Source of the DNA: Podarcis erhardii
Taxonomy: Eukaryota
DNA: 64,000 nt
Assembly: GCA_964252035.1 (NCBI GenBank)
Contig: OZ176205.1
Strand: one strand, 5' to 3'
Below, in pieces: positions 15,232-44,134 of the stretch (its first letter is position 1; each line of letters opens with the position of its first letter). The translations under genes were made by a program, and so were the position numbers. The notes below the pieces were generated by a model. That model worked only from the letters and a program-made list of their open reading frames with translations. It was not told the DNA's origin and made no database searches.

Positions 15232-17048
15232 TACTAAGAGTAGGAAGGCAGCATGCATTTTTAATTCCATTCAGGAGTGAGAGGCTACTGCCATCCCAGC
15301 TGGCCTGAGCACGGCAAAGGAAAAACAAGCCTTTAAAACAGAGTTTGACTTACACCACCCTTCTTTGCTGGCATACGTTCCGCTGTGTTGCCAGGCCATG
15401 TGACTGAGCTGCAAGCGTTGTTTTTTTAAAAATCTCTTCTTTCCCCCTCCTGCCCCCATCACACCACTGGGACACACTTTCAGGGGACATATGCTGGCAA
15501 ACATTCTGCTGGCTGAAATCAAGGGGTGGGGACAAAACAAAACACTGCGGCTTTGTTTAACCCAGGAATGGAGAATCTGAGTCCCAGGTCCTGAATGTGA
15601 TCCACCTGATCTCTCTATCTGGCCCATGTGACTCTTCCCAGGCCGCATCCCTCTCTAACCACACTCCTCACAGCCCCTGTCCCAGGTGGTTTTGCCGGGC
15701 TGGAATGTGTCCTTAAATTGATAATGTCTCTTGTTGCCTTGATGGAGGACGCAGAGGGGTGTGTACGTAGAAACAAGCCTAAGGTACAAAAGTAAGCTTT
15801 ACATTAATTGTTCCACCCACACCACATTAGCCTTTGTCCCCACCCACCCCTGGCATGTGATGTGGCCCTTAGAAGGTTGTCCAGAATGGAATGTGGTTCT
15901 CAGGCTAAGAAGGATTTCCCTAGCCATATGTGTGTGTGCATGCATGCACATGCATGCATGGGGGGGGGGTTTCTTCTGGGTAGTTGGAGTGGAACCCCAG
16001 GTTCAGCTTGCCAACATATCTTATCTGATGCAAAATTTTAATTCATTTCTGGTGCTGAACATGCATTACTATACCCACATACCTGGAAGTCAACCCCACT
16101 GGCCTCAAGTGGGACTTGATGCTGAATTAGACGTGTGCAGGGTAGTGCTGTAAATCTCAGTTCCGAAAGTCCTGGGCTGTTCAGCAATGTGGTTTCGGGT
16201 ATTCAAGAATGTCGATGTAAAAAACAAACAAGCCCCGGAGCACAACAAACCTCTTGTATATGCAATCTTGCTCAGTCAAATGGGTTCAGAGGGAAACTCA
16301 CTGGGTTTATCGTTTTAATATATTTTCCCTGGGAGAGGGAGAAACATTCCTGAATGAATTGGTGTATATAGCGAGACGCCACACATGAAAATGCAATTGA
16401 TGACTAAGTCTGTGCGCCTCTTCCAGGAGGCCGGTTAACTCAAAAGCAACACGTGCAGCTAGTGCCTTTGTTGCACAATAGCATGATGGAGCCTGTGTAA
16501 AAAAGCTATTTATACTCTCTGATTCAGTTAACGGGAGGCTTGCTCTGATGTGCTGCCAGGGACCTTTAAAGTAGCCCATCCAAACAGATAGAGGAGGGCC
16601 TTGATGATCTTGTTTATCTAACCCTCACACATCCAAAACCCTCTTGCCCCCAAACAGAGTCATATCCTCCTAAGGCATTCCCAGAAATGCGGTCTGGAGA
16701 AACAGCTGGCTGGATTTCTCCAAACTGGTTGGCTTAGTTTTTTGTTTGCTGGGCCTCCACTAGGGATGCATGCATGAACTGTGAGTGACATGCAAAGGAA
16801 CAGACAGAGCTCCCGTTATTGAAACACTTTTAACAGTTGCACGGAACAGAGACTATTGGCAGGAACAGCCTTGTAAGGGAGACCCAAACCAGCCCTTACA
16901 AAGCTCTTTGCTGTGATTTGTTCTCAAGCCGAGAGATGGAGAGGCATATCCTGAAACATTTCAGAGGCTGCTTATTTTAATCTGCTTCAAGTAAGTGTTT
17001 GCTCTTCTCCTCCCAGAAGGTGATGGTGCAATGCCAAAAATGCACCGG

Positions 17049-17690
17049 TGTGCTGGACCCGGGGGAAAGGTACCGTGAGCGTAGTCTGAGTCCACACGAA
17101 GAGGGGCGAGGTCCGAGGCGGAGAGCCGGGCGGGGAACAGGAACGCTGGAACAGGAGGCCGAGCAGGGAACAGGAACACCGGATGGTCAGGAACAGGAGG
17201 CCGAGCAGGGAACAGGAGCACCGGGTGGTCAGGAACAGGAGGCCAAGCAGGGAACAGGAACACAGGAAGGTCCAAAGCCAACAACGACGTTGCTCCCGCA
17301 ACCTGGGACCGGGCTGACTGGGCTTTTATCCTCTTCTAAGGCCAGGGGCGGTCCCGGCCCCCAGGAGCCCCGCCTCCTCTGGCCTTAAGGCGAGCACTCC
17401 TCCTGGGAGCAACCAGTTCCCTTCGCCTCTCTGCCCTAAGCCTCTGCAGATCAGGAGAGGCCGAAGGGTTACTGGGCCCTGGAGGAGGCTCACCTGTAGC
17501 CACTGAGTCCTCAAGCCCCTCTGGGGCCTGAAGGGTTTCACCTGGGGCCAGCTCCTGGTGCTCTGCCACAGGTGCAGGCTCTTCAGCATCTAGGCCTTGC
17601 CCCAGTTCAGCCGGCCCTGGAGGCGGGGACTCCTGTGCAGGCTGGGATTCCTCTGGTTCATCCTCTGAATCGGAATCCCAGGCCATCACA
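17049..17690 (-). repeat. 3' LTR (642 bp)
   Basis: Direct repeat of 22073-22714, preceded on the minus strand by the polypurine tract. Confidence 0.97.
17148..17273 (+). repeat. Three tandem 42-bp repeats in the R/U5 part of the LTR (also 22172-22297)
   Basis: Units start at 17148, 17190 and 17232: GGAACAGGAGGCCGAGCAGGGAACAGGAACACCGGATGGTCA with few substitutions. Confidence 0.92.
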
Positions 17691-18199
17691 CCATCCCCCC
17701 TCCCAGGCCCCCCCCTCAACCGAGGGTCCGGACCCGGCTTGCCGGGGTACGTCGCATGGAACTCTCGGAGGCAGGCAGGTGCGTGGACGTTGGCCGCTGG
17801 TTCCCAGGAACGGTCCTCCGGTCCGTACCCCTTCCAGTCAATGAGATACTGCAGCTTTCCCCTGCGGTATCGGGAGTCCAGGATGCGTTCCACCTCGTAC
17901 TCAGGCTCTCCCTGAACCAACACTGGCTGCGGTCGGGGACGGTTCGGGTGGAACTCGTCGGGTGGGGCCACTGGACTCAGAAGGGACCTGTGGAAGACCG
18001 GGTGAACCTTCAGGGTTGCGGGTAACCGGAGACGGAATGCCACAGGAGAGACTTGGTCCACGATAGGGAACGGGCCGGTGAATCGGGCGTCCAACTTCCG
18101 CGAAGGTCGAGAGGGGTGGAGGTGGCGAGTGGAGAGCCAAACCAGGTCACCGACGCGAAGTTCCGGCCCCACCTGGCGGTGGCGGTCGGCCTGGGCTTT
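17336..18199 (-). CDS. In-frame continuation of pol after the TAA: integrase C-terminus (GPF motif), chromodomain, then an acidic/basic tail encoded in U3 of the 3' LTR
   Basis: Same frame as 18200-22009 (22039-18172 is divisible by 3); FTGPFPI motif; chromodomain YEVERILDSR...YLIDWKGYGPEDRSWEP; no stop until TAG at 17336-17338 inside the LTR. Confidence 0.88.
   Translation of the reverse strand, partial: KAQADRHRQVGPELRVGDLVWLSTRHLHPSRPSRKLDARFTGPFPIVDQVSPVAFRLRLPATLKVHPVFHRSLLSPVAPPDEFHPNRPRPQPVLVQGEPEYEVERILDSRYRRGKLQYLIDWKGYGPEDRSWEPAANVHAPACLREFHATYPGKPGPDPRLRGGPGRGDGVMAWDSDSEDEPEESQPAQESPPPGPAELGQGLDAEEPAPVAEHQELAPGETLQAPEGLEDSVATGEPPPGPSNPSASPDLQRLRAERRRELVAPRRSARLKARGGGAPGGRDRPWP
17694..17704 (-). 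other. Polypurine tract (plus-strand primer)
   Basis: GGGAGGGGGGA on the minus strand, 3 nt before the TG of the 3' LTR. Confidence 0.9.
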
Positions 18200-21100
18200 T
18201 TACGCTTCCTTGGCCTGGTGCAGTTGCTCCACCAAAAGCTGTTGCTGGGACTGGAGCTCTTGAAGCCACTCCGTCACCGCCGGGACCGCGGATGCCGGCA
18301 GCACATCTGGAAACAGCCGTGGATGATAACCGTAACTGGCCTGGAACGGGGTCTGCTGGGTGGACGCATTCACCGCGTTGTTGTAGGCGAACTCCGCCAA
18401 TGCCAGGTGGTCGACCCAGTCATCCTGCTGGTAGCTGCAGTAACACCGGAGGTACTGCTCCAGCACCGCGTTCGCCCGTTCCGTCTGGCCATCGGTCTGT
18501 GGGTGGTAGGCTGACGAGAGGCAGACCTCTGTCCCGAGGGTCTGGTGTAATGCTCGCCAGAACCGGGATGTGAACTGAACGCCCCGGTCGGACACCACGC
18601 GCTCAGGTAGGCCATGCAGGCGGAAGACATGCTGAAGGTACAGCTGAGCGGTTTCCTTGGCTGTGGGTACAGATGGGCAGGGGGCGCAGTGCACCATCTT
18701 GGTGAAATGGTCGGAGAAAACTAGGAGGCAGGTACAACCACGAGACGGGGGTAAGTCCACTACAAAGTCCAACGAAACCGTGTGCCAAGGGCGCGGTGGA
18801 ACTGGCAATGGCTGAAGTAGGCCGGGGGGTCGCCCGGTAGGGCCCTTGGCGCGCCGGCAGACATCACAACCAGCAACGTATCGAGCCACGTCAGCCTTCA
18901 GGCGGGGCCACCAAAACTCACGACTGACCAGATGGGTGGTCCGATACCGTCCAAAGTGCCCCGCTGCTGGGGCATCATGGGCCATCCGGAGAACCTCCAG
19001 CCGCAGTGGCCCTGGCGGGATGTACAGACGACCGTGGTGCAGCAGAAGGCCCTGATGCAGGACCAGCCCCGGATACTGTGGGCTGGACCCTTCAGCCAGC
19101 TCCTGGAGTCGTTCCTGGGCCCAAGCGTCGACCCGCTGCTGTTTCCGCACCCGAGCCTGCAGTGGCTCCGCCTCCTGGGTGGCCAGGAATGCAGCTGGAG
19201 GTAGGATCGTGGTGGGTTCTGCTTGCTGTACCGTGTCTGAGTTGTCTTCAGGTTTCCGGGACAGGGCATCCGCCTTCTGGTTCTGAGAGCTAGGGATGTA
19301 GCGGATCCGGAACTGGAACCGGGAAAAGAACAACGCCCACCGGATCTGTCTTTGGTTCAGCTTGCGGGTGGTCTGGAGGTACTCCAGGTTCCGGTGGTCG
19401 GTTCTCACCTCCACCGGATGTCGTGCCCCCTCAAGATGGTGGCGCCAGACCTCAAAGGCCACCTTGATGGCCAGTAGTTCCCGCTCCCACACAGTATAGT
19501 TACGCTCCGCTGGTAGGAGCTGGCGGGAATAGAAGGCACAGGGTAAGAGTGGCGCTTCAGGTCCATTCTGTTGAGACAAGACGGCACCGAGAGCCGTACT
19601 GGAGGCGTCGGTCTCCACCACAAAGGGTCGAGAGGGGTCAGGATGTTGTAAGATTGGCGCCCTCTGGAAACAGGCCTTCAACCCCTGAAACGCCTCCTCT
19701 GCCTCCTTGTCCCAGGAAAACGGCGTCTTTGGGCGCAGTAGCCGGGTCAACGGGGTGGTGCGATGAGCATAATCTGCGATGAAGGTCCGGTAGTAGTTGG
19801 CGAACCCCAGGAAACGCTGTAGGTCCTTGCGGTTCCGGGGTGCCGCCCATTCTCGAACCGCTGCCACCTTCCCAGGGTCCATCTGCACCCCATCTGGAGA
19901 GAGCCGGTGTCCAAGGAAGTCCACAGTCCGCTGATGGAACTCGCACTTGCTGAGCTTTGCGTACAAACGGTGCTCACGCAAGCGCTGCAGCACGGTCCGG
20001 ACATGTCCCTCATGGTGAGCCGGGTCACGGGAGTAAACCAGTATGTCATCCAAGTACACCACCACGTACTTGTCTAACAAGTCCTGGAACACGTGGTTGA
20101 TGTAGCGTTGGAACACAGCAGGCGCGTTGCACAAACCGAAAGGCATAACCAAGTATTCGAACTGCCCGTACCGGGTCCCAAATGCTGTCTTCCACTCATC
20201 CCCGGCTCGGATCCGAATCAAGTTGTAGGCCCCCCGGAGGTCCAGCTTGGTGAACACCTGTGCCCCTTGCACCCGCTCCAGCAACTCTGAGATAAGGGGC
20301 AAGGGGTACCGGTCTGGGATGGTAATTTTGTTCAGGGCTCGGTAATCATGGCAAGGGCGAAGTTCCCCACATTTCTTCTTAACAAAGAGCACTGGTGCCG
20401 CGGTAGGCGAGGTGGAAGGCCTAATGAACCCACGCTCCAGGTTCTTGCGCAAGAAGTCCTGCAAAGCCTCGCGCTCTGGCTCTGTTAGAGAATATAAGCG
20501 ACTCACTGGTAAGGGTGCTCCGGGCTGGAGGTCTATGCCGCAGTCAAAAGGTCGATGCGGCGGCAGCTGGTCTGCCCCCCGTTCCTCGAACACGTCCTGG
20601 TAGTCCTGGTACACGGCTGGGAGCGTGGGTGCTGCCTCCTCCGTGGGCGCGGCCGCCAGCGTCTCGGATTGAGCATGGGAACATGGGTCTGGGAAGTGCA
20701 CAGTCCGTTTGACCCAGTCAATCTGAACGTTGTGAGCTTCCAGCCAGTCCATCCCGAGCACGAGGGGGAACCGGGGCATAGAGGCAATGTCCAAAGTTCG
20801 CAACTCCCGGTGCTGCTGGAGACACAGGACCAGGGGCTGGGTCTCCTGAGTAACGGCTCCTGAACGTAGAAGCCGTCCGTCAATTGCTTCCACCTGGACC
20901 GGTTCTGGCTTGTTCCGAAGTGGCACCTGATGATGGGCAGCAAAAGCAGTGTCCATATAAGAACGGGTTGCTCCTGAATCCACCAAAGCATGGGTAAGAA
21001 TCCAGGGCCCACCTGGAGGGTATAAACGTACCGGAACCATAAGATGTTGCAAGTCCATTGGTGCGGGCCCATTCTGCGCTGTTTGGGACCCCCGGTAGCT

Positions 21101-22009
21101 AGGGCCATCAGCTACTGGGGGTTGGCGGTTTCCCTGCGGCTGGCGTTTCTCAGGGCAGGACCGAGCGTAGTGTCCACTTCCGCCACAGTAGAGACATAGA
21201 TTCCCCTCCCGACGCCGCACCTTCTCTGCGGGGGAAAGGCATGGCCGCACTGCCCCGAGCTGCATAGGCTCCTCCGATAACTCAGTTGTGACCGTGGGGC
21301 TGCCGGAAGAAACTGGTGCCGAGAACTGGAGGTGTCGTCGGCCCCGGGCCTGGCGACGATCCTCCAGCCGGTCGTCTATCTGTAGACTCCGTTGAATGAG
21401 AGTGTCTAGCGTGGTGGGGCGTTCCATTGTGGCCAGCTGGTCCAGTATCTCGTCCGAAAGCCCTTCGAGATACTGGTCCCGCAATGCCGAGTCGTTCCAG
21501 GTCAAGTCCTGTGCCAACAGCCGAAACTCCGTGGTATATGCGGCCACCGTGGACTCGCCCTGTTTCAACTGCCGAATCGCCCGGTTGGCTTGACTCCCTT
21601 TCTGGGGGTTGCCGAACGCGGCCTCCAAAAGATTGCAAAACCCCATATAGTCTGCCAGCAAGGGGGAGTCTTGCCTGAGTAGCGGCAACGCCCACTTGGC
21701 CGCCTGGTCCTTTAACAAACTAATCAAAAAGTGCACCTTGGTGCGGTCGTCAGGGAAGTTCCGGGCTCGCCCCTGAATATACAGCTTGGCTTGGGCGAGG
21801 AACATGGGAAAGCTGGCCGGGGCTCCATCAAATTTCTCGGGCAAAGCCACTGGGTACTTGCCAGGAGCCGGGGCGTCAGCCCCAGGAGCCGGTAGGGCTT
21901 CCAAGCGCTGCTGAAGTGCCGTAACCGCGTCGCTGAGCTGCTGCACGGTGTGAGTCAAGGCCTGGTTCTTCTGGGCCAAAGCCACCAGCGCAGCCGCCTG
22001 GTCAGCCAT
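18200..22009 (-). CDS. gag-pol: Gag-Pol polyprotein (Gag, CCHC knuckle, aspartic protease, RT, RNase H, integrase core), ending at a premature TAA
   Basis: ATG at 22009 in strong Kozak context (GCCATGG); zinc knuckle CLYCGGSGHYARSC at 21155-21196; protease LVDSGA near 20972-20986; RT YLDD at 20045-20056; RNase H VETDAS; integrase HHCC (HDAPAAGH...CDVC) and D,D-35-E core (SLDFV, SDRG, DGQTE). Confidence 0.95.
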   Translation of the reverse strand: MADQAAALVALAQKNQALTHTVQQLSDAVTALQQRLEALPAPGADAPAPGKYPVALPEKFDGAPASFPMFLAQAKLYIQGRARNFPDDRTKVHFLISLLKDQAAKWALPLLRQDSPLLADYMGFCNLLEAAFGNPQKGSQANRAIRQLKQGESTVAAYTTEFRLLAQDLTWNDSALRDQYLEGLSDEILDQLATMERPTTLDTLIQRSLQIDDRLEDRRQARGRRHLQFSAPVSSGSPTVTTELSEEPMQLGAVRPCLSPAEKVRRREGNLCLYCGGSGHYARSCPEKRQPQGNRQPPVADGPSYRGSQTAQNGPAPMDLQHLMVPVRLYPPGGPWILTHALVDSGATRSYMDTAFAAHHQVPLRNKPEPVQVEAIDGRLLRSGAVTQETQPLVLCLQQHRELRTLDIASMPRFPLVLGMDWLEAHNVQIDWVKRTVHFPDPCSHAQSETLAAAPTEEAAPTLPAVYQDYQDVFEERGADQLPPHRPFDCGIDLQPGAPLPVSRLYSLTEPEREALQDFLRKNLERGFIRPSTSPTAAPVLFVKKKCGELRPCHDYRALNKITIPDRYPLPLISELLERVQGAQVFTKLDLRGAYNLIRIRAGDEWKTAFGTRYGQFEYLVMPFGLCNAPAVFQRYINHVFQDLLDKYVVVYLDDILVYSRDPAHHEGHVRTVLQRLREHRLYAKLSKCEFHQRTVDFLGHRLSPDGVQMDPGKVAAVREWAAPRNRKDLQRFLGFANYYRTFIADYAHRTTPLTRLLRPKTPFSWDKEAEEAFQGLKACFQRAPILQHPDPSRPFVVETDASSTALGAVLSQQNGPEAPLLPCAFYSRQLLPAERNYTVWERELLAIKVAFEVWRHHLEGARHPVEVRTDHRNLEYLQTTRKLNQRQIRWALFFSRFQFRIRYIPSSQNQKADALSRKPEDNSDTVQQAEPTTILPPAAFLATQEAEPLQARVRKQQRVDAWAQERLQELAEGSSPQYPGLVLHQGLLLHHGRLYIPPGPLRLEVLRMAHDAPAAGHFGRYRTTHLVSREFWWPRLKADVARYVAGCDVCRRAKGPTGRPPGLLQPLPVPPRPWHTVSLDFVVDLPPSRGCTCLLVFSDHFTKMVHCAPCPSVPTAKETAQLYLQHVFRLHGLPERVVSDRGVQFTSRFWRALHQTLGTEVCLSSAYHPQTDGQTERANAVLEQYLRCYCSYQQDDWVDHLALAEFAYNNAVNASTQQTPFQASYGYHPRLFPDVLPASAVPAVTEWLQELQSQQQLLVEQLHQAKEA
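21066..21134 (-). other. -1 ribosomal frameshift cassette: GGGAAAC slippery heptamer plus predicted H-type pseudoknot
   Basis: G-GGA-AAC in the gag frame at 21134-21128; stem 1 CCCCCAGUAGCU/AGCUACCGGGGG (11 of 12 pairs); stem 2 GGCCC/GGGCC (loop 21101-21109 with 21066-21070). Same layout as the PEG10/sushi signal. Confidence 0.8.
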
Positions 22010-22060
22010 GGCCTCTGGCTCTTCCCGAACGCACCCCAACGAAGGGGGAGTGCGGGTGGG

Positions 22061-22070
22061 GCGGGAGCAA
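22061..22070 (-). other. Primer-binding site of the self-priming type (not complementary to tRNA CCA)
   Basis: Minus strand TTGCTCCCGC, 2 nt after the 5' LTR; no TGG start; perfectly complementary to LTR positions 22314-22323. Confidence 0.7.
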
Positions 22071-22072
22071 AC

Positions 22073-22714
22073 TGTGCTGGACCCGGGGGAAAGGTACCGT
22101 GAGCGTAGTCTGAGTCCACACGAAGAGGGGCGAGGTCCGAGGCGGAGAGCCGGGCGGGGAACAGGAACGCTGGAACAGGAGGCCGAGCAGGGAACAGGAA
22201 CACCGGATGGTCAGGAACAGGAGGCCGAGCAGGGAACAGGAGCACCGGGTGGTCAGGAACAGGAGGCCAAGCAGGGAACAGGAACACAGGAAGGTCCAAA
22301 GCCAACAACGACGTTGCTCCCGCAACCTGGGACCGGGCTGACTGGGCTTTTATCCTCTTCTAAGGCCAGGGGCGGTCCCGGCCCCCAGGAGCCCCGCCTC
22401 CTCTGGCCTTAAGGCGAGCACTCCTCCTGGGAGCAACCAGTTCCCTTCGCCTCTCTGCCCTAAGCCTCTGCAGATCAGGAGAGGCCGAAGGGTTACTGGG
22501 CCCTGGAGGAGGCTCACCTGTAGCCACTGAGTCCTCAAGCCCCTCTGGGGCCTGAAGGGTTTCACCTGGGGCCAGCTCCTGGTGCTCTGCCACAGGTGCA
22601 GGCTCTTCAGCATCTAGGCCTTGCCCCAGTTCAGCCGGCCCTGGAGGCGGGGACTCCTGTGCAGGCTGGGATTCCTCTGGTTCATCCTCTGAATCGGAAT
22701 CCCAGGCCATCACA
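22073..22714 (-). repeat. 5' LTR (642 bp)
   Basis: On the minus strand begins TGTGATGG and ends CCAGCACA; no differences from 17049-17690 found by eye, and the ORF-track translations of the two copies match. Confidence 0.97.
22348..22354 (-). promoter_or_regulatory. TATA-like box of the LTR promoter (GATAAAA)
   Basis: Lies 25 nt upstream of the putative self-priming 5' end; the same motif and spacing occur in the solo LTR (42211-42217). Confidence 0.55.
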
Positions 22715-25328
22715 ACCGGTTTGGAAACCGAATCGGTTCACTATTTTGGCCCACCCTTGACAGCTTGTCATGCAAAGCTGCACTTAGTGAAATCCCCTCT
22801 TCTCTATGACTGTTAAGGAACTGTGTCCTCCTTTCTATCTAGCTATGAAAAAGCACTCTAGGCCTGTCCCTCAGCTCACACCTAATAAAGTCTCAGATTG
22901 CCCTGAGAATCAGCTTTCACCTAAAAGCTGGAAATGATATCAACAGAGTCCCCTGAGATTGCACCCTCAGGCTTACTCTGCAGATGAAGTGCTAAGAGAT
23001 GTGAACTGGCCAAAGTCTCTCATAAAGTTTGTGGCAGAGAAGAGAGATGAACAACACTGTGGATGAACAGGGTGGCCATATGTCCTATTTTACTCCAGAC
23101 AATCCTCTACTTGAAGGGCTGTCCAGGCCAAAGTCTGGTTTGAATATATGTCTGGTTATCAAGGCCTTCCCCTTGAGGACGATAACACTTCATGCGTTTG
23201 GCAATATGGGCCCTAGTCTGTGAAAGCTTAGGTCATAACTCTGTAACTCTTGAAGGTGCCACAGGACTGTTGTTTTTGCTGCAACAATCTAGCATGGCTG
23301 TCCCTCTGAAAGATGTTGCCTCAGATATGCCAGTGTGCTTTCAGCTTTCTTAACTGATAACTTTTATGAATCAATTTATGCATTCATCTTTCACCACTCT
23401 AGGCATCCTCAAGGTGACATGCATCACAAAAATAACACCACTGAAGTACAATCCCCTCCCCAAAGCCAACAGCAATTAAACAGAGAGACTACGGCTGCAG
23501 GCACCCCATACATTTAGAGCACATTTAAAGCATATGACTTCCTCAAAAGAATCATGGGAACTGTAGTTTACCCCTCACAGAGCCAGCCCCCATGTCAAAC
23601 TACAGCTCCCATTATCCTTTGGAGGAAGTTGTGTGCTTATAAATGTATGATGTGTATGCAGCCTATTGATTTCTATAGGAGCGGTTCAACCATTCTGATT
23701 TCTCTCTCACCGAGATAGCTCAGCTTTAGCTTATAGTCGTTCTTATTTTACTAATATGTTATGGAATAAAATGGGCAAAATTATAATACACCAGAGGGGG
23801 AAACATAGCTCCCTACCTTTTGGTTTTTTAATAAGACCTTGAGCCAATAAGGTCATTTAAATTTACATCCCTTTCCCCAAAGCTGGTCCCTAGAAACCGT
23901 TCTCCCCTGCCCCACATGAATATGCATGCCTACCTATAAGGCTTCTCTTTCTCTCCCCCCGCCCCCCCTTCTCTCAGACTTCCTGACAGAATTCCTACCC
24001 ATCTGAGTGGCCTTCAAGAATGGACTGTAACTCTGCTCAGTCTAAAGTGGGGAAAGGGGGAGACAGGCTTTTCATTTAAACACCCTCCCCCCTCGATCAA
24101 GAGTAAACATTGTTCCTTTCACAAAGGAGCAGATTGTATTAGCTGGGAGATCAAGATAGAAGGAGAGACTCCTATGAGCAGAAGGCAAACGGGATGTGAA
24201 TATAAATTCTGCAAATATTTTCTTTCAGCCGCTGTGCGTAATCCCAGGAAATGGATCCAGTTTCGTTGCTGGAGGTGGGGGAGTGGGGAGCACTCTGCAT
24301 TCCAGTTGCCACAGGTTTCTTTGTGACAGTTTAAATATTTCATCCTGGGGGGGTGGGGGTGGGACTTTTCTTCAGACATTATTTAACCCTGCTCAGATCT
24401 GAAAAAAACACACAAAAGGAAGCAACAAGAAAAAATGGCGACAGGTAAAGGTTTTTGTAATGTGGGATAACAGAAGTGAAAATAGGGACACTTTTGTTTT
24501 CAGCACCCTCTTTTTTGCACAGGAAGATAGGAAGCCAGCCCTGTGTCAAGTCAAACCACTACTCCATCAACCTCCATCAACTGGAATATCTGGTTGGCCG
24601 CTGTAAGAACAGGATGCTGGAGGAGCCTTTTCTCTGATCCAGTAGGGCTTTTATTTTGTTCAGTATTGTCCACAGTGGCAGGCAGCTGCTGTCCAGTGTT
24701 TCAGATGAGGGAAATTCGCAGTTCTGCCTGGAATTGTCTGGGATTGAGTTCTGAATGCAAAGCAGATTCTCTATCACTGAGCTATGGCCTTTCCCCTCCA
24801 GAGATATAGAAAAATACAGAAATGCTGAAACACAGGAAGTATCAGTGCTTGGTCTCTCTCCACAAACCCCACCCTCAATCAGAACACGATTCCTACAAAC
24901 CAGATGTTGCCACAGGTTTCAGAGAGCCTCTTAGTTGCTCTTTCAAAAAACCGGTGAGAGGCACGATCTCGTCTTTTATTCAGGTTTCCCAGAGTTTCTC
25001 TTGAGCTGGGTGGGCTCAATTGCATTAGACCACAATGTTTCTCGAGGCCCGCTATTCCATCTGACAGAAGCCATGAGGCAGCACTGTGGTGGTGTATGTG
25101 GTACACCACATCATTAAGATGCTCTCGCTGGATCCAGAAAAGGTTTCTATCATACACTTCAAGTTACAAACGCCAGCATCTGCCAGGTCCACCAGATGGC
25201 TTCCATTAGAGAGGCCCAAAGTGGTGCCAGTCTCAGGTCTATTTGGCACATGAAAGGGGTGCATTTTATGGGGCAATGTAGCAAATAGAGTCAGAACAAG
25301 AAGTAATTATAAAGGGCTGCCACCAATT

Positions 25329-40600: not shown

Positions 40601-41997
40601 TTACTACACAATCTACCAGTTCTCTGGCTCTGAGTTGGACAAGCGTAACAGTATCTTCTAATGCAGGATAATGTAATCTCCCATATGATTTTGAAATCCA
40701 GTAATCATTCTGTGCTAGTAGTTGTACTCTCTCATTTCATGCTGCAAGCTTCTGCATTCTGTGCTTCCTTTTCATGTCTGATTCACTTATTCAGAGCAAT
40801 CCGCCACAGAACTGAGTGCTCATTGATCTCAGTGGTCTTAACCACAGCTAACTCTGTGCTGCTCATGGCCTTTTGGTGATGATATGGAGAGCTCATTAAT
40901 GGATTTTGAGGTTTTCCTCCTGTCAGGGCATGGTGAGAGTGTTGATCATTCAGCCACTTTGCCATGTGCTCTGTTCTCAATTTTTCTACATCTTCCCGCA
41001 GTTTCCAAAGCTTTGTGGGGGTACAGTAAGTCAAGAAGGGGAGCAGTTGGTGAAACCAGTCCACAACCACATCACCACACCACCTTGGGGCAACCCTCCC
41101 CTCAAGTACGTTCATACAACACACATTTCATTATCTAAACATATCGATGCCAAGCAACTTGGCTCCCAGCTCCTGTAACACCTATAGGGGGGAAATTCAG
41201 CAAAGCGAGAGAATGGGCCCATTAGACAGCCCCAAATAAAGACCTTCCCTTGGAGGCAAAAGACCAAAGTCTTGGCCTGAGCATTATCCTAAGTGACGCT
41301 GACAGCTGATCAGGTTGGGCCTTTTAAACAATGTCTTAATTACAGGACATCCTCTGCTGTGACGTTTTCTAGGGACACTTTCAGCTCTTTTATAAAGGAG
41401 CCTTCTCTGCCCTCCCTCCAGATCGGCGGCCAGGGCTTGAGCAAGAGCTGCTGAAACAGTGAGGATATTGTTCGGTTCTCAGCCTGAGCAGCCTTGGCTT
41501 CATCAGCTGTGAAATTGCCTAGAGAATAACTAAACAAACTAGAGACAAACACTTCTTTAAAGCAGCAATTTCCCCTGCCTGGCATCTGCGTTCAAGCTGC
41601 ATTTCTTGCTCTCCTTTCCCCGCTTCTCCTTTCCTCTCCTGCCTTTCAAAGGCTAAAAGTGTTCTGTGGTGCCCCCAGTAAAGAAAAGGGGGATCTTATC
41701 AGCTTGTTGGGAATGCTAAGCAATCATTGCATCAGCACCGTCTTTATTTCTCCCCAGGGATCCAGGAGCACTTCGAAACTTTGAAACTCTTTTCACGCCT
41801 TCGGTGAACTCACAGAGGGTGAATATGGATTGTGCCCATTTTCCACTGCTCAAAACTCTATGCAGTCAGCTACAGATCCAAATAGAGCCTGCCTGAGTGC
41901 AAATAGTGGGCACCTAGCTATAACCACATAATTGTTGCACAACTCCATGGACAAAAGTGTTTTTTAAGGTGTCTGCACACAGATAAACATAGACCTG

Positions 41998-42594
41998 TGT
42001 GCTGGTCCCGTGGGCTAACCGAGAGGCGAGGTCCGAGTCCAGTCTGAGGTCGATGGTGCAATATGGAGGCACTCCGTAGAAGTTGAAGCTGGGTGCAGGG
42101 CAGGGAGTTGGGTGAGGTCAGGAGCTCTGGCAGAGAAGCAGGTCAGGGATCAGGCTGGAACTGACAACCAACGATGTTGCTCCCACAGCTTCGGACTGGG
42201 GCTGGCTGGCTTTTATCTCCCCCAAGGCATAGGGCGGCCCCAATCCTCAGGTGACTTGCCTCTCCTGGCCTGGAGGCGAGCACTCCTTAGTTTCCTCCGC
42301 CTCTTTGCCCTGAGCCTCTGCAGCTCAGGAGAGGCTGGAGGGTTACCGGACCCAGAGGCAACCTCAGCCTCCTCTGACGGGGCTGAGAGTGGAGCACCTG
42401 CAGGCAATAGGTCCTCCATCACCTCAGGAGCCAGAGCAGACTCAGCTGGTGCCTGCACCTGAGGATCCAGCACAGGTGAGGACCCTTCAGGCTCAGGCCC
42501 CAGCCCCGACTCAGCTGGTTCTGGAGGCGGGGAATCCTGTGCAGGCTGAGATGCCTCAGGTTCAGCATCCGAATCCAATTCCCAGGCCATTACA
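41998..42594 (-). mobile_element. Solo LTR (597 bp) of a related but distinct Gypsy family
   Basis: TG...CA termini resembling the full-length LTR (TGTAATGGCCTGGGA...CCAGCACA); 5-bp TSD ACCTG at 41993-41997 and 42595-42599; U3 alignable to the 642-bp LTR. Confidence 0.93.
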
Positions 42595-44134
42595 ACCTGC
42601 TTCCATGCCATCAGTTGCTTTCACAATTATTTGTGTTGTTTTTAATGCTGTTGGATGTTTTATAATTGTACAGCACACAGATATTTTGTGAGATGGTGGT
42701 CTAGAAATACTGCTATAAATAAACAAAGGACCTCAGGTTTCTGGAGCTTCCAGAGGGCAGGGAAATAGGAATTGAGGGGAGGGGACAACCGCGCACAGCA
42801 CAAGTATTAAGATTCTGGAGGCATAAAACTGAAAGCACTTGTGCGTGAAAGACAGTGCACAAATGTTCACATCAAAAAAAGCAATCCACGTGCACATTAA
42901 TAACCTAGTCTGACTAGGGATAAAGTAATCTGTCAATTTCAGTTTATCTCTTTCTAATTTCCTCAGTATTGAGTTCACTTCTCCACATTTAACTTGACCG
43001 ACTCATGCCATTGTTTGCACTGGTATTGTATTGCAGTCTTTGCCAACCTGGCATCCTCCAGATATTTTCGACTCCAACTCCCAGTTATGTTACCAAACAT
43101 CTGGTAAATGCCAGGTTGGCAGAAGTTGAAGTATAGTATTCTGGCATTATGGTAGGCATTATACTTCAATTTTCCATCCAATGTGACAAAACACAAAACA
43201 AAAATGGGCACACAGGTTGGGAAAAAAAGCCCTTAAAGTGGCCATGTAAACAACTAGCTCTTAATTCTTCTTCCCATTTCTGGCATTTAGACTGTAAGCT
43301 TTCAGTGGGAGATCTGAATTATTTATTTGTCCTTATTAACTACTTATATATAAACTTTTCAATGAGTTTTGCAATGTTCTAGCAACATGTGAATTTAATG
43401 TGTCAAGCTGGCAAAGGCCAAAATATTCTCTTAGGATGAAACTATGTATCTCATTATTTGTATATGTAAAATCGCACTTAAGTATATATGTAAAAACATA
43501 CTTAGTTACATCTCAATCCTGTTCATGCCTACTCGTAAGTAATTTCCAGTGAGTTCAATAGGCCTTACTCCAGATAAATGGGTATAGGGTTGCACCCCTA
43601 AACTGGCCATTTTTATTTTGAAGAAAAAGTAAACACAGAACCTCAGTCTGGAATGTGGCACCTATTTCCTGACTAAAATCCACCCCAAGCTGCTATTTGC
43701 CCTGGCAGTGCTGCAAGGAGCACATTCAGGGGCAAATAGCAGCTGAAGGTGATCGTTTAGCGGGAAACTAGCTTCAGGTTGGAGGCCCTTGACTGTTTTC
43801 TTCTTCAAATCATAAATGTAACATATAGCTTTGCCCTCAATGGGAGCCCAGTGGCCAAAGAGTCTCCTTGTTTTTCAGAACTTTGCATAATCCTAGCTAG
43901 AGAACATTTATAGAAGTCAAGGAGTACCACATGACCCTCACTAGACTGTCAATACACTTCCTTGCTGGCCTGGCTGATTCCCCCATAATTCCCTCTTTGG
44001 GGCAGAGCTGAGTGATGTACACAGGATATACACACTCATCCGTCATCTCTCAAGCCCCCGGTTCTTGCTGGAGTCCTGACTCAACACCTTCCAATGTGTG
44101 ACCATACTGTTCCGCTTTTGCAGAACATAAATAT

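Follow-up and report, generated by a model that had tools for sequence, protein, structure and literature searches.

Does the integrase of a lizard retrotransposon carry, in a tail written by its own long terminal repeat (LTR), a second handle on the nucleosome? The question is raised by a 64,000-nucleotide stretch of the Podarcis erhardii genome (contig OZ176205.1 of assembly GCA_964252035.1), here called the window, in which the octapeptide RRSARLKA stands near the C-terminal end of an integrase. The element concerned is a nearly intact, very recent Ty3/gypsy (Metaviridae) chromovirus of a lacertid lizard, and its novelty lies in the integrase, to which a conserved, U3-encoded motif of the HMGN type has been added. 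The tail bearing this motif is a translated part of pol under purifying selection, and nowhere in the tail is protein sequence better conserved than in the motif, a pattern seen in at least three lineages.

The integrase tail and its motif

The pol frame of this element, read on the minus strand, crosses the polypurine tract and continues into the 3' LTR, and the last 117 codons of pol (VMAWDSD...RPWP) are therefore LTR sequence. The LTR start at position 17690 is the third base of a Gly codon, right after the purine tract. In order of reading, the features concerned are the following:

17691..17704 (read 17704-17691), minus strand: polypurine tract GGGAGGGGGGATGG, inside the reading frame (..GRGDG..) and adjoining the LTR start TGTGATGG
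17049..17690, minus strand: 3' LTR, 642 nt, TG...CA, whose first 355 nt extend the pol frame
17471..17689, minus strand: acidic linker, U3-encoded, 73 amino acids, net charge -19 (19 D+E, 0 K+R), predicted to be disordered
17339..17470, minus strand: basic C-terminal block, U3-encoded, 44 amino acids, net charge +8, containing SP-LQRLRAERRR and the motif
17381..17404 (17404..17381), minus strand: HMGN-like motif RRSARLKA, residues 257-264 of the 278-amino-acid C-terminal piece of pol
17336..17338, minus strand: TAG stop of the pol frame, within U3
17323..17330, minus strand: TATA-like box GATAAAAG, 5 nt past the stop

The open reading frame (ORF) fills almost the whole of the presumed U3, a label that we infer from the TATA-like box. 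Several statements of a preliminary description of this locus can be checked against this layout. The tail does end in a basic block, with 12 K+R against 4 D+E in its last 44 residues, and the claim that it is encoded in U3 is supported, since the LTR begins in frame after the purine tract and the TAG falls 5 nt before the TATA-like box. The description had further ascribed the chromodomain, the acidic linker, and a second tethering or localization module of the integrase all to the LTR; this was borne out for the acidic linker and the basic block but not for the chromodomain (17756-17899), which is not LTR-encoded, being placed upstream of the polypurine tract. An AlphaFold2 model built from a 12-sequence alignment was confident for the SH3-like domain and the chromodomain, whereas the tail was predicted to be disordered, with a predicted local distance difference test (pLDDT) score below 50 and no secondary structure over most of residues 150-278, a segment that includes the motif. 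The junction of polypurine tract and LTR start was likewise in frame in L002 (a Logan contig), L001 (an ENA contig), and L003; in an element of Crotalus adamanteus with a verified LTR pair the 3' LTR starts about 109 codons ahead of the pol stop.

A further LTR in the window allowed the coding status of the tail to be assessed:

41998..42594, minus strand: solo LTR of a diverged subfamily, 597 nt, with the duplication CAGGT at 41993-41997 and 42595-42599 and the octapeptide LRSARLQA at 42267-42290

This solo LTR shares 68.6% nucleotide identity with the LTR of the full element, and its tail ORF is still open over 126 codons. The two copies are separated by two indels (+30 and -12 nt), both multiples of three, and a single frame is open across about 120 codons, whereas the remaining two frames hold 3 to 11 stops in both LTR copies. 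The Nei-Gojobori method, applied to 113 aligned codons, gave a synonymous divergence (dS) of 0.62 and a nonsynonymous divergence (dN) of 0.27, and hence a dN/dS of 0.44 (bootstrap interval, 0.28-0.68; 0.1% of replicates reach 1); this estimate is conservative, because part of the divergence arose neutrally once the solo LTR had been fixed. Together, the dN/dS, the in-frame indels, and the one open frame are the basis on which the tail is counted as coding, and the same tail forms the end of the full-length polyproteins of 1,551-1,559 amino acids in database copies. The TATA-like box is also kept in the solo LTR, where the stop of the ORF falls inside it.

The octapeptides lie where the preliminary description had placed them, though on the minus strand (17404..17381, 22428..22405, and 42290..42267): the plus-strand reading of these positions gives GLKASTPP, GLKASTPP, and GLEASTP*, and the motif is therefore a minus-strand feature. 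The second RRSARLKA belongs to the 5' LTR of the same element and is hence not independent of the first; in the solo LTR the context is KLRSARLQAR. The match to the HMGN core RRSARLSA, which had been pointed out before, extends to 7 of 8 residues, the first six (RRSARL) being identical. The pattern of an HMGN-like short motif, namely Arg at positions i, i+1, and i+4 with Ser at i+2, a small residue at i+3, and an aliphatic one at i+5, is present in the tail; the solo LTR has the variant RSARL, and two Anolis subfamilies have RRSLRI. Calculated analytically from residue frequencies in six frames, RRSARL should occur 0.012 times per 64-kb six-frame translation, and RRS[AS]R[LI] about 1e-4 times per 117-amino-acid tail of this composition. 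A lone RRSARL match in a genome-wide scan is thus only mildly surprising; what contradicts chance is that independent lineages have the motif in the same position.

An ATG-initiated ORF of 87 amino acids in an alternative frame overlaps the tail ORF (17326-17589, minus strand; 22350-22613 in the 5' LTR copy). It was considered as an overlapping gene and rejected, its frame being broken in the solo LTR. The UniProt/Ensembl models P0131 and P0182 take this ORF as an N terminus fused to gag, and in two further gene models, P0004 and P0101, it is the 5' LTR copy of the tail ORF that is spliced onto gag. All four look like artefacts, P0131 and P0182 because the solo LTR does not keep the 87-amino-acid frame open; the 5' LTR copy of the tail ORF, which lies upstream of the promoter, should belong to no pol product.

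Conservation of the motif across relatives

Within the Podarcis family of this element, [AS]PRRSARLKA[RK] was found in six database proteins that represent at least three subfamilies. Outside it, a chromovirus family of Anolis carolinensis (clusters of 366 and 94 members; integrase 60% identical) has a post-chromodomain tail of 126 residues that ends in ...EAASRRSARIAAKNLAN and is barely alignable to that of Podarcis apart from the motif. Across 11 distinct Anolis tails, the octapeptide reads RRS[A/L]RIAA, with 7 of the 8 motif columns invariant, whereas none of the 7 preceding or the 6 following columns is. A third occurrence is provided by L001/P0008 (ENA ERZ27260165, contig k141_8243, positions 16-567), in which only 16 residues follow the LTR start and end in RRSARIAARV*, so that the tail is essentially the motif alone. 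In a tree built on the region of the SH3 and chromodomain (148 columns, a quick search, to be taken as a rough guide only), L001/P0008 grouped with elements of the frog Ranitomeya (Shimodaira-Hasegawa-like approximate likelihood ratio test [SH-aLRT], 91), outside the internally unresolved squamate clade that holds the window's family, Anolis, the snakes, and a second Podarcis family (SH-aLRT, 85).

The codons of the motif differ between these lineages: AGG AGG AGT GCT CGC CTT AAG GCC in Podarcis and CGG AGG TCG GCC AGG ATT GCA GCA in L001. The two agree at 12 of 24 nucleotides and at 6 of 8 residues, and their Ser codons come from different families. The constraint therefore appears to act on the peptide and not on the U3 DNA, in a codon-level test for which L001 is the single informative sequence. 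In a 13-sequence alignment of tails (three snake-type elements, Podarcis, Anolis, L001, and the solo LTR among them), the only columns past the LTR start in which at least 70% of rows agree were a Gly, a Pro, an SP pair, and R-R-S-x-R-x-x-A, and of these the motif's third Arg alone was invariant; the motif had been singled out earlier as among the best-conserved parts of the alignment, and here it is.

The reach of these comparisons was set by the searches behind them. The Anolis family was found by searching with the 1279-amino-acid piece of pol restricted to the integrase region, and the word search was limited by length windows; with the 117-amino-acid tail alone, it matched only two truncated Podarcis fragments. 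A large HMMER search gave 20,974 matches at E <= 0.001, and the best 150 of these, mostly Ranitomeya gene models, contained no further motif-bearing lineage but added lineages with motif-less tails (e.g., P0271).

Two side observations concern these relatives. In linkers that are otherwise unalignable, an acidic run followed by an aromatic GF (EEENLGF, EEEFIGF, EELEGF, SFRGF) recurs in P0132 (Anolis), P0027 (Podarcis lilfordi), and P0159/P0161, perhaps as another short motif; its place is taken by AWDSDSEDE in the window's tail. Many gene models of Ranitomeya imitator (proteins P0269-P0401) fuse a chromoviral SH3 and chromodomain end to proteases, kinases, or G protein-coupled receptor-like host exons, which is probably annotation read-through from intronic insertions.

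The chromovirus insertion

The remainder of the element is laid out as follows:

17049..22714, minus strand: complete Ty3/gypsy chromovirus insertion, 5,666 bp, identified by the LTR pair and Pfam domains, with a single gag-protease-reverse transcriptase-RNase H-integrase frame
17044..17048, with a second copy at 22715-22719: target-site duplication ACCGG flanking the 5,666-bp unit
22073..22714, minus strand: 5' LTR, 642 nt, TG...CA, 100% identical to the 3' LTR and holding an untranslated copy of the tail ORF that includes the motif (22405-22428)
18203..22009, minus strand: gag-pol frame, from a likely ATG at 22009-22007 (MADQAAAL...) to the codon preceding the in-frame stop
18200..18202, minus strand: single in-frame TAA interrupting the integrase, with the frame resuming downstream as KAQADRHRQVGPELRV...
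17969..18151, minus strand: SH3_Tf2-1, the SH3-like C-terminal domain of the integrase (Pfam E = 7.6e-19)
17756..17899, minus strand: Chromo (PF00385), HP1 type (Pfam E = 1.4e-15), after SH3_Tf2-1 and ahead of the LTR start

On the minus strand, both LTR copies start with TGTGATGG and finish with CCAGCACA. The interrupted pol was searched as two separate pieces, the 1279- and the 278-amino-acid piece, of which the former matched in order gag (DUF4939, Retrotrans_gag, zf-CCHC), RVP_2, RVT_1, RT_RNaseH, Integrase_H2C2, and rve. The LTR pair with TG..CA ends and a short duplication, the gag-protease-reverse transcriptase-RNase H-integrase order, and the C-terminal chromodomain of the integrase identify the insertion as a chromovirus. 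Its chromodomain aligned to HP1 alpha and beta (CBX5 and CBX1; E = 6e-15) and has Y, W, and Y at the three positions that, going by HP1, we take to form the aromatic cage. The nearest proteins were polyproteins of Podarcis muralis, with family members of 1,551 and 1,559 amino acids; one of them, P0121, is 99% identical across the integrase region, and the position of the TAA is open both in it and in P0266. With LTRs that are 100% identical and one in-frame TAA, this copy is very young, yet by itself incapable of making a full-length integrase.

The window holds no runs of N. Downstream of the TATA-like box, each LTR contains a 42-nt unit repeated three times in tandem (91% matches; 17148-17272 and 22172-22296), a region over which the solo LTR does not align. 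The sequence after the 5' LTR (22040-22072, minus strand; GTTTGCTCCCGCCCC...) lacks the initial TGG typical of a tRNA primer-binding site.

A candidate nucleosome anchor, its rivals, and its precedents

HMGN proteins bind nucleosomes via RRSARLSA, and in cryo-electron microscopy structures of 2025 the part of the motif that is resolved on the H2A-H2B acidic patch is RRSAR (HMGN2 residues 22-26); contact is made mainly by R23 and R26, R26 is the canonical arginine anchor, and phospho-Ser24 is modelled as repulsive (PMC12487698). The tardigrade protein Dsup works in the HMGN manner through RRSSRLTS (PMC12487698), and the three arginines of RRSARIAT in yeast Dot5 are required both to bind nucleosomes in vitro and to associate with chromatin in vivo (bioRxiv 10.64898/2026.01.14.699602). 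Because the integrase motif is identical to the RRSAR resolved in HMGN2/HMGN5 and akin to the functional motifs of Dsup and Dot5, we lean, if only modestly, toward reading the core of the basic block, PRRSARLKAR, as an HMGN-type arginine anchor that would dock on the H2A-H2B acidic patch and, with the chromodomain, make a two-point contact with the nucleosome. The integrase would then end in an SH3-like domain, an HP1-type chromodomain, and a 117-residue disordered extension tipped by the arginine anchor; the chromodomain would hold a methylated H3 tail (of the H3K9me type) while the tail motif held the acidic patch of the target nucleosome. Such a hold might raise affinity for nucleosomal (heterochromatic) targets, tether the preintegration complex to (mitotic) chromatin, or both. 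The Ser of the motif could make the contact switchable by phosphorylation, as in HMGN, and the 73-residue acidic linker could fold back and mask the basic tip of the same molecule until displaced. Within this scheme, we infer the cooperation with the chromodomain, the regulation by phosphorylation, and the masking by the acidic linker. That a whole group of vertebrate chromoviruses (lacertid, anole, and at least one frog-clade element) shares a two-part nucleosome reader, composed of an HP1-type chromodomain and a U3-written HMGN-type anchor overlapping the promoter region, is a tentative proposal whose chances we put a little short of even.

Much of what weighs against acidic-patch docking also speaks for a plainer function, in which the basic block, RRSARLKA included, would be mainly a nuclear or nucleolar localization signal (NLS), or a generic contact with nucleic acid or the intasome, and its likeness to HMGN incidental to richness in Arg. 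Basic C-terminal tails of LTR-retrotransposon integrases do act as NLSs, that of Ty1 being an example, and the 12 K+R of the last 44 residues include the clusters RAERRR and RRSARLKAR, which lie about 10 residues apart in a bipartite-like arrangement. Conservation of the motif in related elements, the refuting check named in the preliminary description, came out in favour of that description, with the motif kept in the Podarcis copies, Anolis, and the frog-clade element, but it did not extend to several other squamate tails. The exact motif is absent from the snake-type tails ...DARRRRQLARVRQQ, ...DARRRRQTSRDKQR, and ...IRRRWDRRRQQKER (RRRRQLARV, RRRRQTSRDK, and RRRWDRRR); the tail of P0271 (assembly GCA_030035675.1, which we take to be a probable worm lizard), ...ECRQQKVRQKRGRPVSLRPKR, and that of the second Podarcis family (P0159/P0161, Podarcis muralis), ...RRKLPRRESRRRVSVK, lack the RRSxR spacing; and P0003 and an element of P. 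lilfordi likewise have Arg/Lys-rich ends without it. A motif that is not universal implies that a generic basic function might suffice, and the persistence of Arg/Lys-rich ends in the snake, P0271, second Podarcis family, and P. lilfordi tails fits a constraint on composition over sequence. Even where the motif occurs it is not always entire, the first Arg having been lost in the solo LTR (LRSARLQA) and Ala replaced by Leu in two Anolis subfamilies. All of these motif-lacking relatives, P0003 among them, keep the acidic-then-basic layout, so that the exact motif marks some lineages and the acidic-then-basic U3-encoded tail a wider squamate clade. An NLS, however, constrains composition and not exact sequence, whereas in Podarcis, Anolis, and the frog-clade element the Ser, the small residue, the i/i+1/i+4 spacing of Arg, and the aliphatic residue are kept while flanks drift and codons differ; moreover, the short-tailed P0008 retains the motif and almost nothing more. 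We therefore regard a role confined to localization or generic contact as unlikely, if still to be reckoned with, and the NLS and tethering roles are compatible rather than mutually exclusive.

Conservation might alternatively reside in the DNA, as part of a promoter or enhancer in U3, with the open frame and the motif as by-products or chance. The motif-coding DNA lies 51-74 nt upstream of GATAAAAG, the full and solo LTRs are nearly identical in nucleotides across the motif, and, at about 0.012 expected per window, a genome-wide scan will yield one RRSARL; within the Podarcis family, cis-regulatory and coding constraint are inseparable at this distance from the TATA-like box, a further point against the anchor reading. 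The selection analysis speaks for the peptide, with a dN/dS of 0.44, in-frame indels, and one frame open in both LTR subfamilies, as do database polyproteins that end in the tail, the low expectation per tail, and the recurrence of the motif in Anolis and in L001, with its differing nucleotides and Ser codon family. An origin in DNA-level constraint is, on this evidence, very improbable. Somewhat less so, though still improbable in our view, is that the motif serves as some other regulatory or docking site, either a phospho-site of a basophilic kinase (Arg-Arg-Ser) or a contact for a host chromatin factor, comparable to that which the integrase tail of murine leukemia virus (MLV) makes with BET proteins. 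An invariant Ser directly follows two Arg, which is a PKA/Aurora-type context, and the tail is disordered and terminal like that of MLV integrase; no search, however, pointed to a specific partner. The HMGN-type mode explains the same residues fully, with Ser contacting H2A and its phosphorylation as an off-switch (PMC12487698).

Acidic-patch docking, the reading toward which we lean, has to contend lastly with how little of HMGN is present. Neither HMG14_17 nor any other Pfam family matched at E up to 10, whether the query was the whole tail, its 44-amino-acid basic block, or a tail from Anolis, L001, or Crotalus; a phmmer search of all PDB chains with the tail gave no match at E = 10; and the likeness of the window's tail to HMGN is confined to 6-8 residues. 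Structure prediction is of doubtful help, given that AlphaFold 3 is reported to misplace the HMGN motif itself (PMC12487698). These points set bounds on what the motif can be called. Since homology beyond the motif was undetected and the Lys/Pro-rich half is missing, the tail, judged by sequence, is best described as carrying an HMGN-like short linear motif rather than as belonging to the HMGN family. The idea that a host HMGN exon was captured is unsupported, as similarity ends at the motif; that the HMGN motif, which is restricted to vertebrates, and these vertebrate elements are linked by descent, one having captured it from the other, has at most the slenderest probability.

The choice of integration site by LTR retrotransposons and retroviruses is usually credited to one tether, whether a chromodomain, a host factor (LEDGF, BET), or Gag on the acidic patch. 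With a conserved HMGN-type anchor following the chromodomain, bivalent recognition of the nucleosome by the intasome would have a simple model; if true, no mobile element would have been known before to carry an HMGN-like motif and no retrotransposon integrase to tether directly to the acidic patch, and the case would add a mobile-element member to a small, recently defined class of HMGN-like acidic-patch binders, which the structural study of 2025 predicted to be "an untapped realm" (PMC12487698). Apart from any such role, the element shows that U3 can consist almost entirely of coding sequence under purifying selection, here 355 nt that stop a few bases short of the TATA-like box, a point of consequence for the annotation of LTR elements in squamates, where public models now splice the LTR ORF onto gag or host exons.

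Set beside known systems, the earlier interpretation of this locus is partly supported, with corrections to the strand, to the share of the LTR, and to its novelty given a plant precedent. The arrangement had been called undescribed: a chromoviral integrase with an HMGN-type motif, or any acidic-patch motif on a retrotransposon integrase, was indeed not found in a literature search of incomplete coverage, but an integrase C terminus encoded by the LTR is known, since such a terminus, a presumed targeting module, defines the plant CRM clade and occurs also in some Bingo elements (PMC3605345). As in CRM and Bingo, the pol frame here passes the polypurine tract and a C-terminal integrase module is LTR-encoded, over 355 nt of ORF. 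In CRM, however, the CR motif, which is chromodomain derived, lies downstream of the polypurine tract, whereas here the chromodomain lies upstream of it and the LTR adds an acidic/basic extension; the hosts are plants in one case and squamates in the other, and the sequences are unrelated.

The first six residues of the Podarcis motif are those of the HMGN core; the three arginines (i, i+1, i+4), the Ser (i+2), and the aliphatic residue (i+5) are common to it and to HMGN, Dsup, and Dot5, and the RRSARIAA of Anolis and L001 differs from the RRSARIAT of Dot5 at the eighth residue only. In the HMGN domain a Lys/Pro-rich second half is expected after the core. That DNA-contacting half is missing here, where the motif is followed by RGGGAPGGRDRPWP in Podarcis or by KNLAN in Anolis; the acidic region precedes the motif in the window's tail and follows it in HMGN; and the carrier is a retrotransposon integrase, for which nucleosome binding is proposed, and not an architectural protein of chromatin.

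Tethering to the acidic patch by an arginine anchor is established for LANA of Kaposi's sarcoma-associated herpesvirus, IE1 of cytomegalovirus, and Gag of prototype foamy virus, the last of which influences the choice of integration site (PMC9040877). Like the tail described here, these are short, disordered, Arg-containing peptides, in their case from integrating or episomal viruses, with acidic-patch docking that is theirs in fact and here by proposal; their sequences and conformations are other than this one, they reside in Gag or latency proteins, and they lack the HMGN-type RRSAR pattern. Other integrases end in comparable appendages. The C-terminal tail of MLV integrase binds BET proteins, and the C terminus of Ty1 integrase is an NLS and AC40-binding region; both are short and unstructured, as here, and set localization or target choice, but they bind host proteins or importins and are not LTR-encoded. 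Chromoviral integrases with a full, HP1-like aromatic cage, a type linked to heterochromatin targeting, likewise have an HP1-type chromodomain after an SH3-like domain, with the three cage positions kept; the targeting described for them is by the chromodomain alone, whereas in the Podarcis element a second conserved candidate nucleosome contact follows it.

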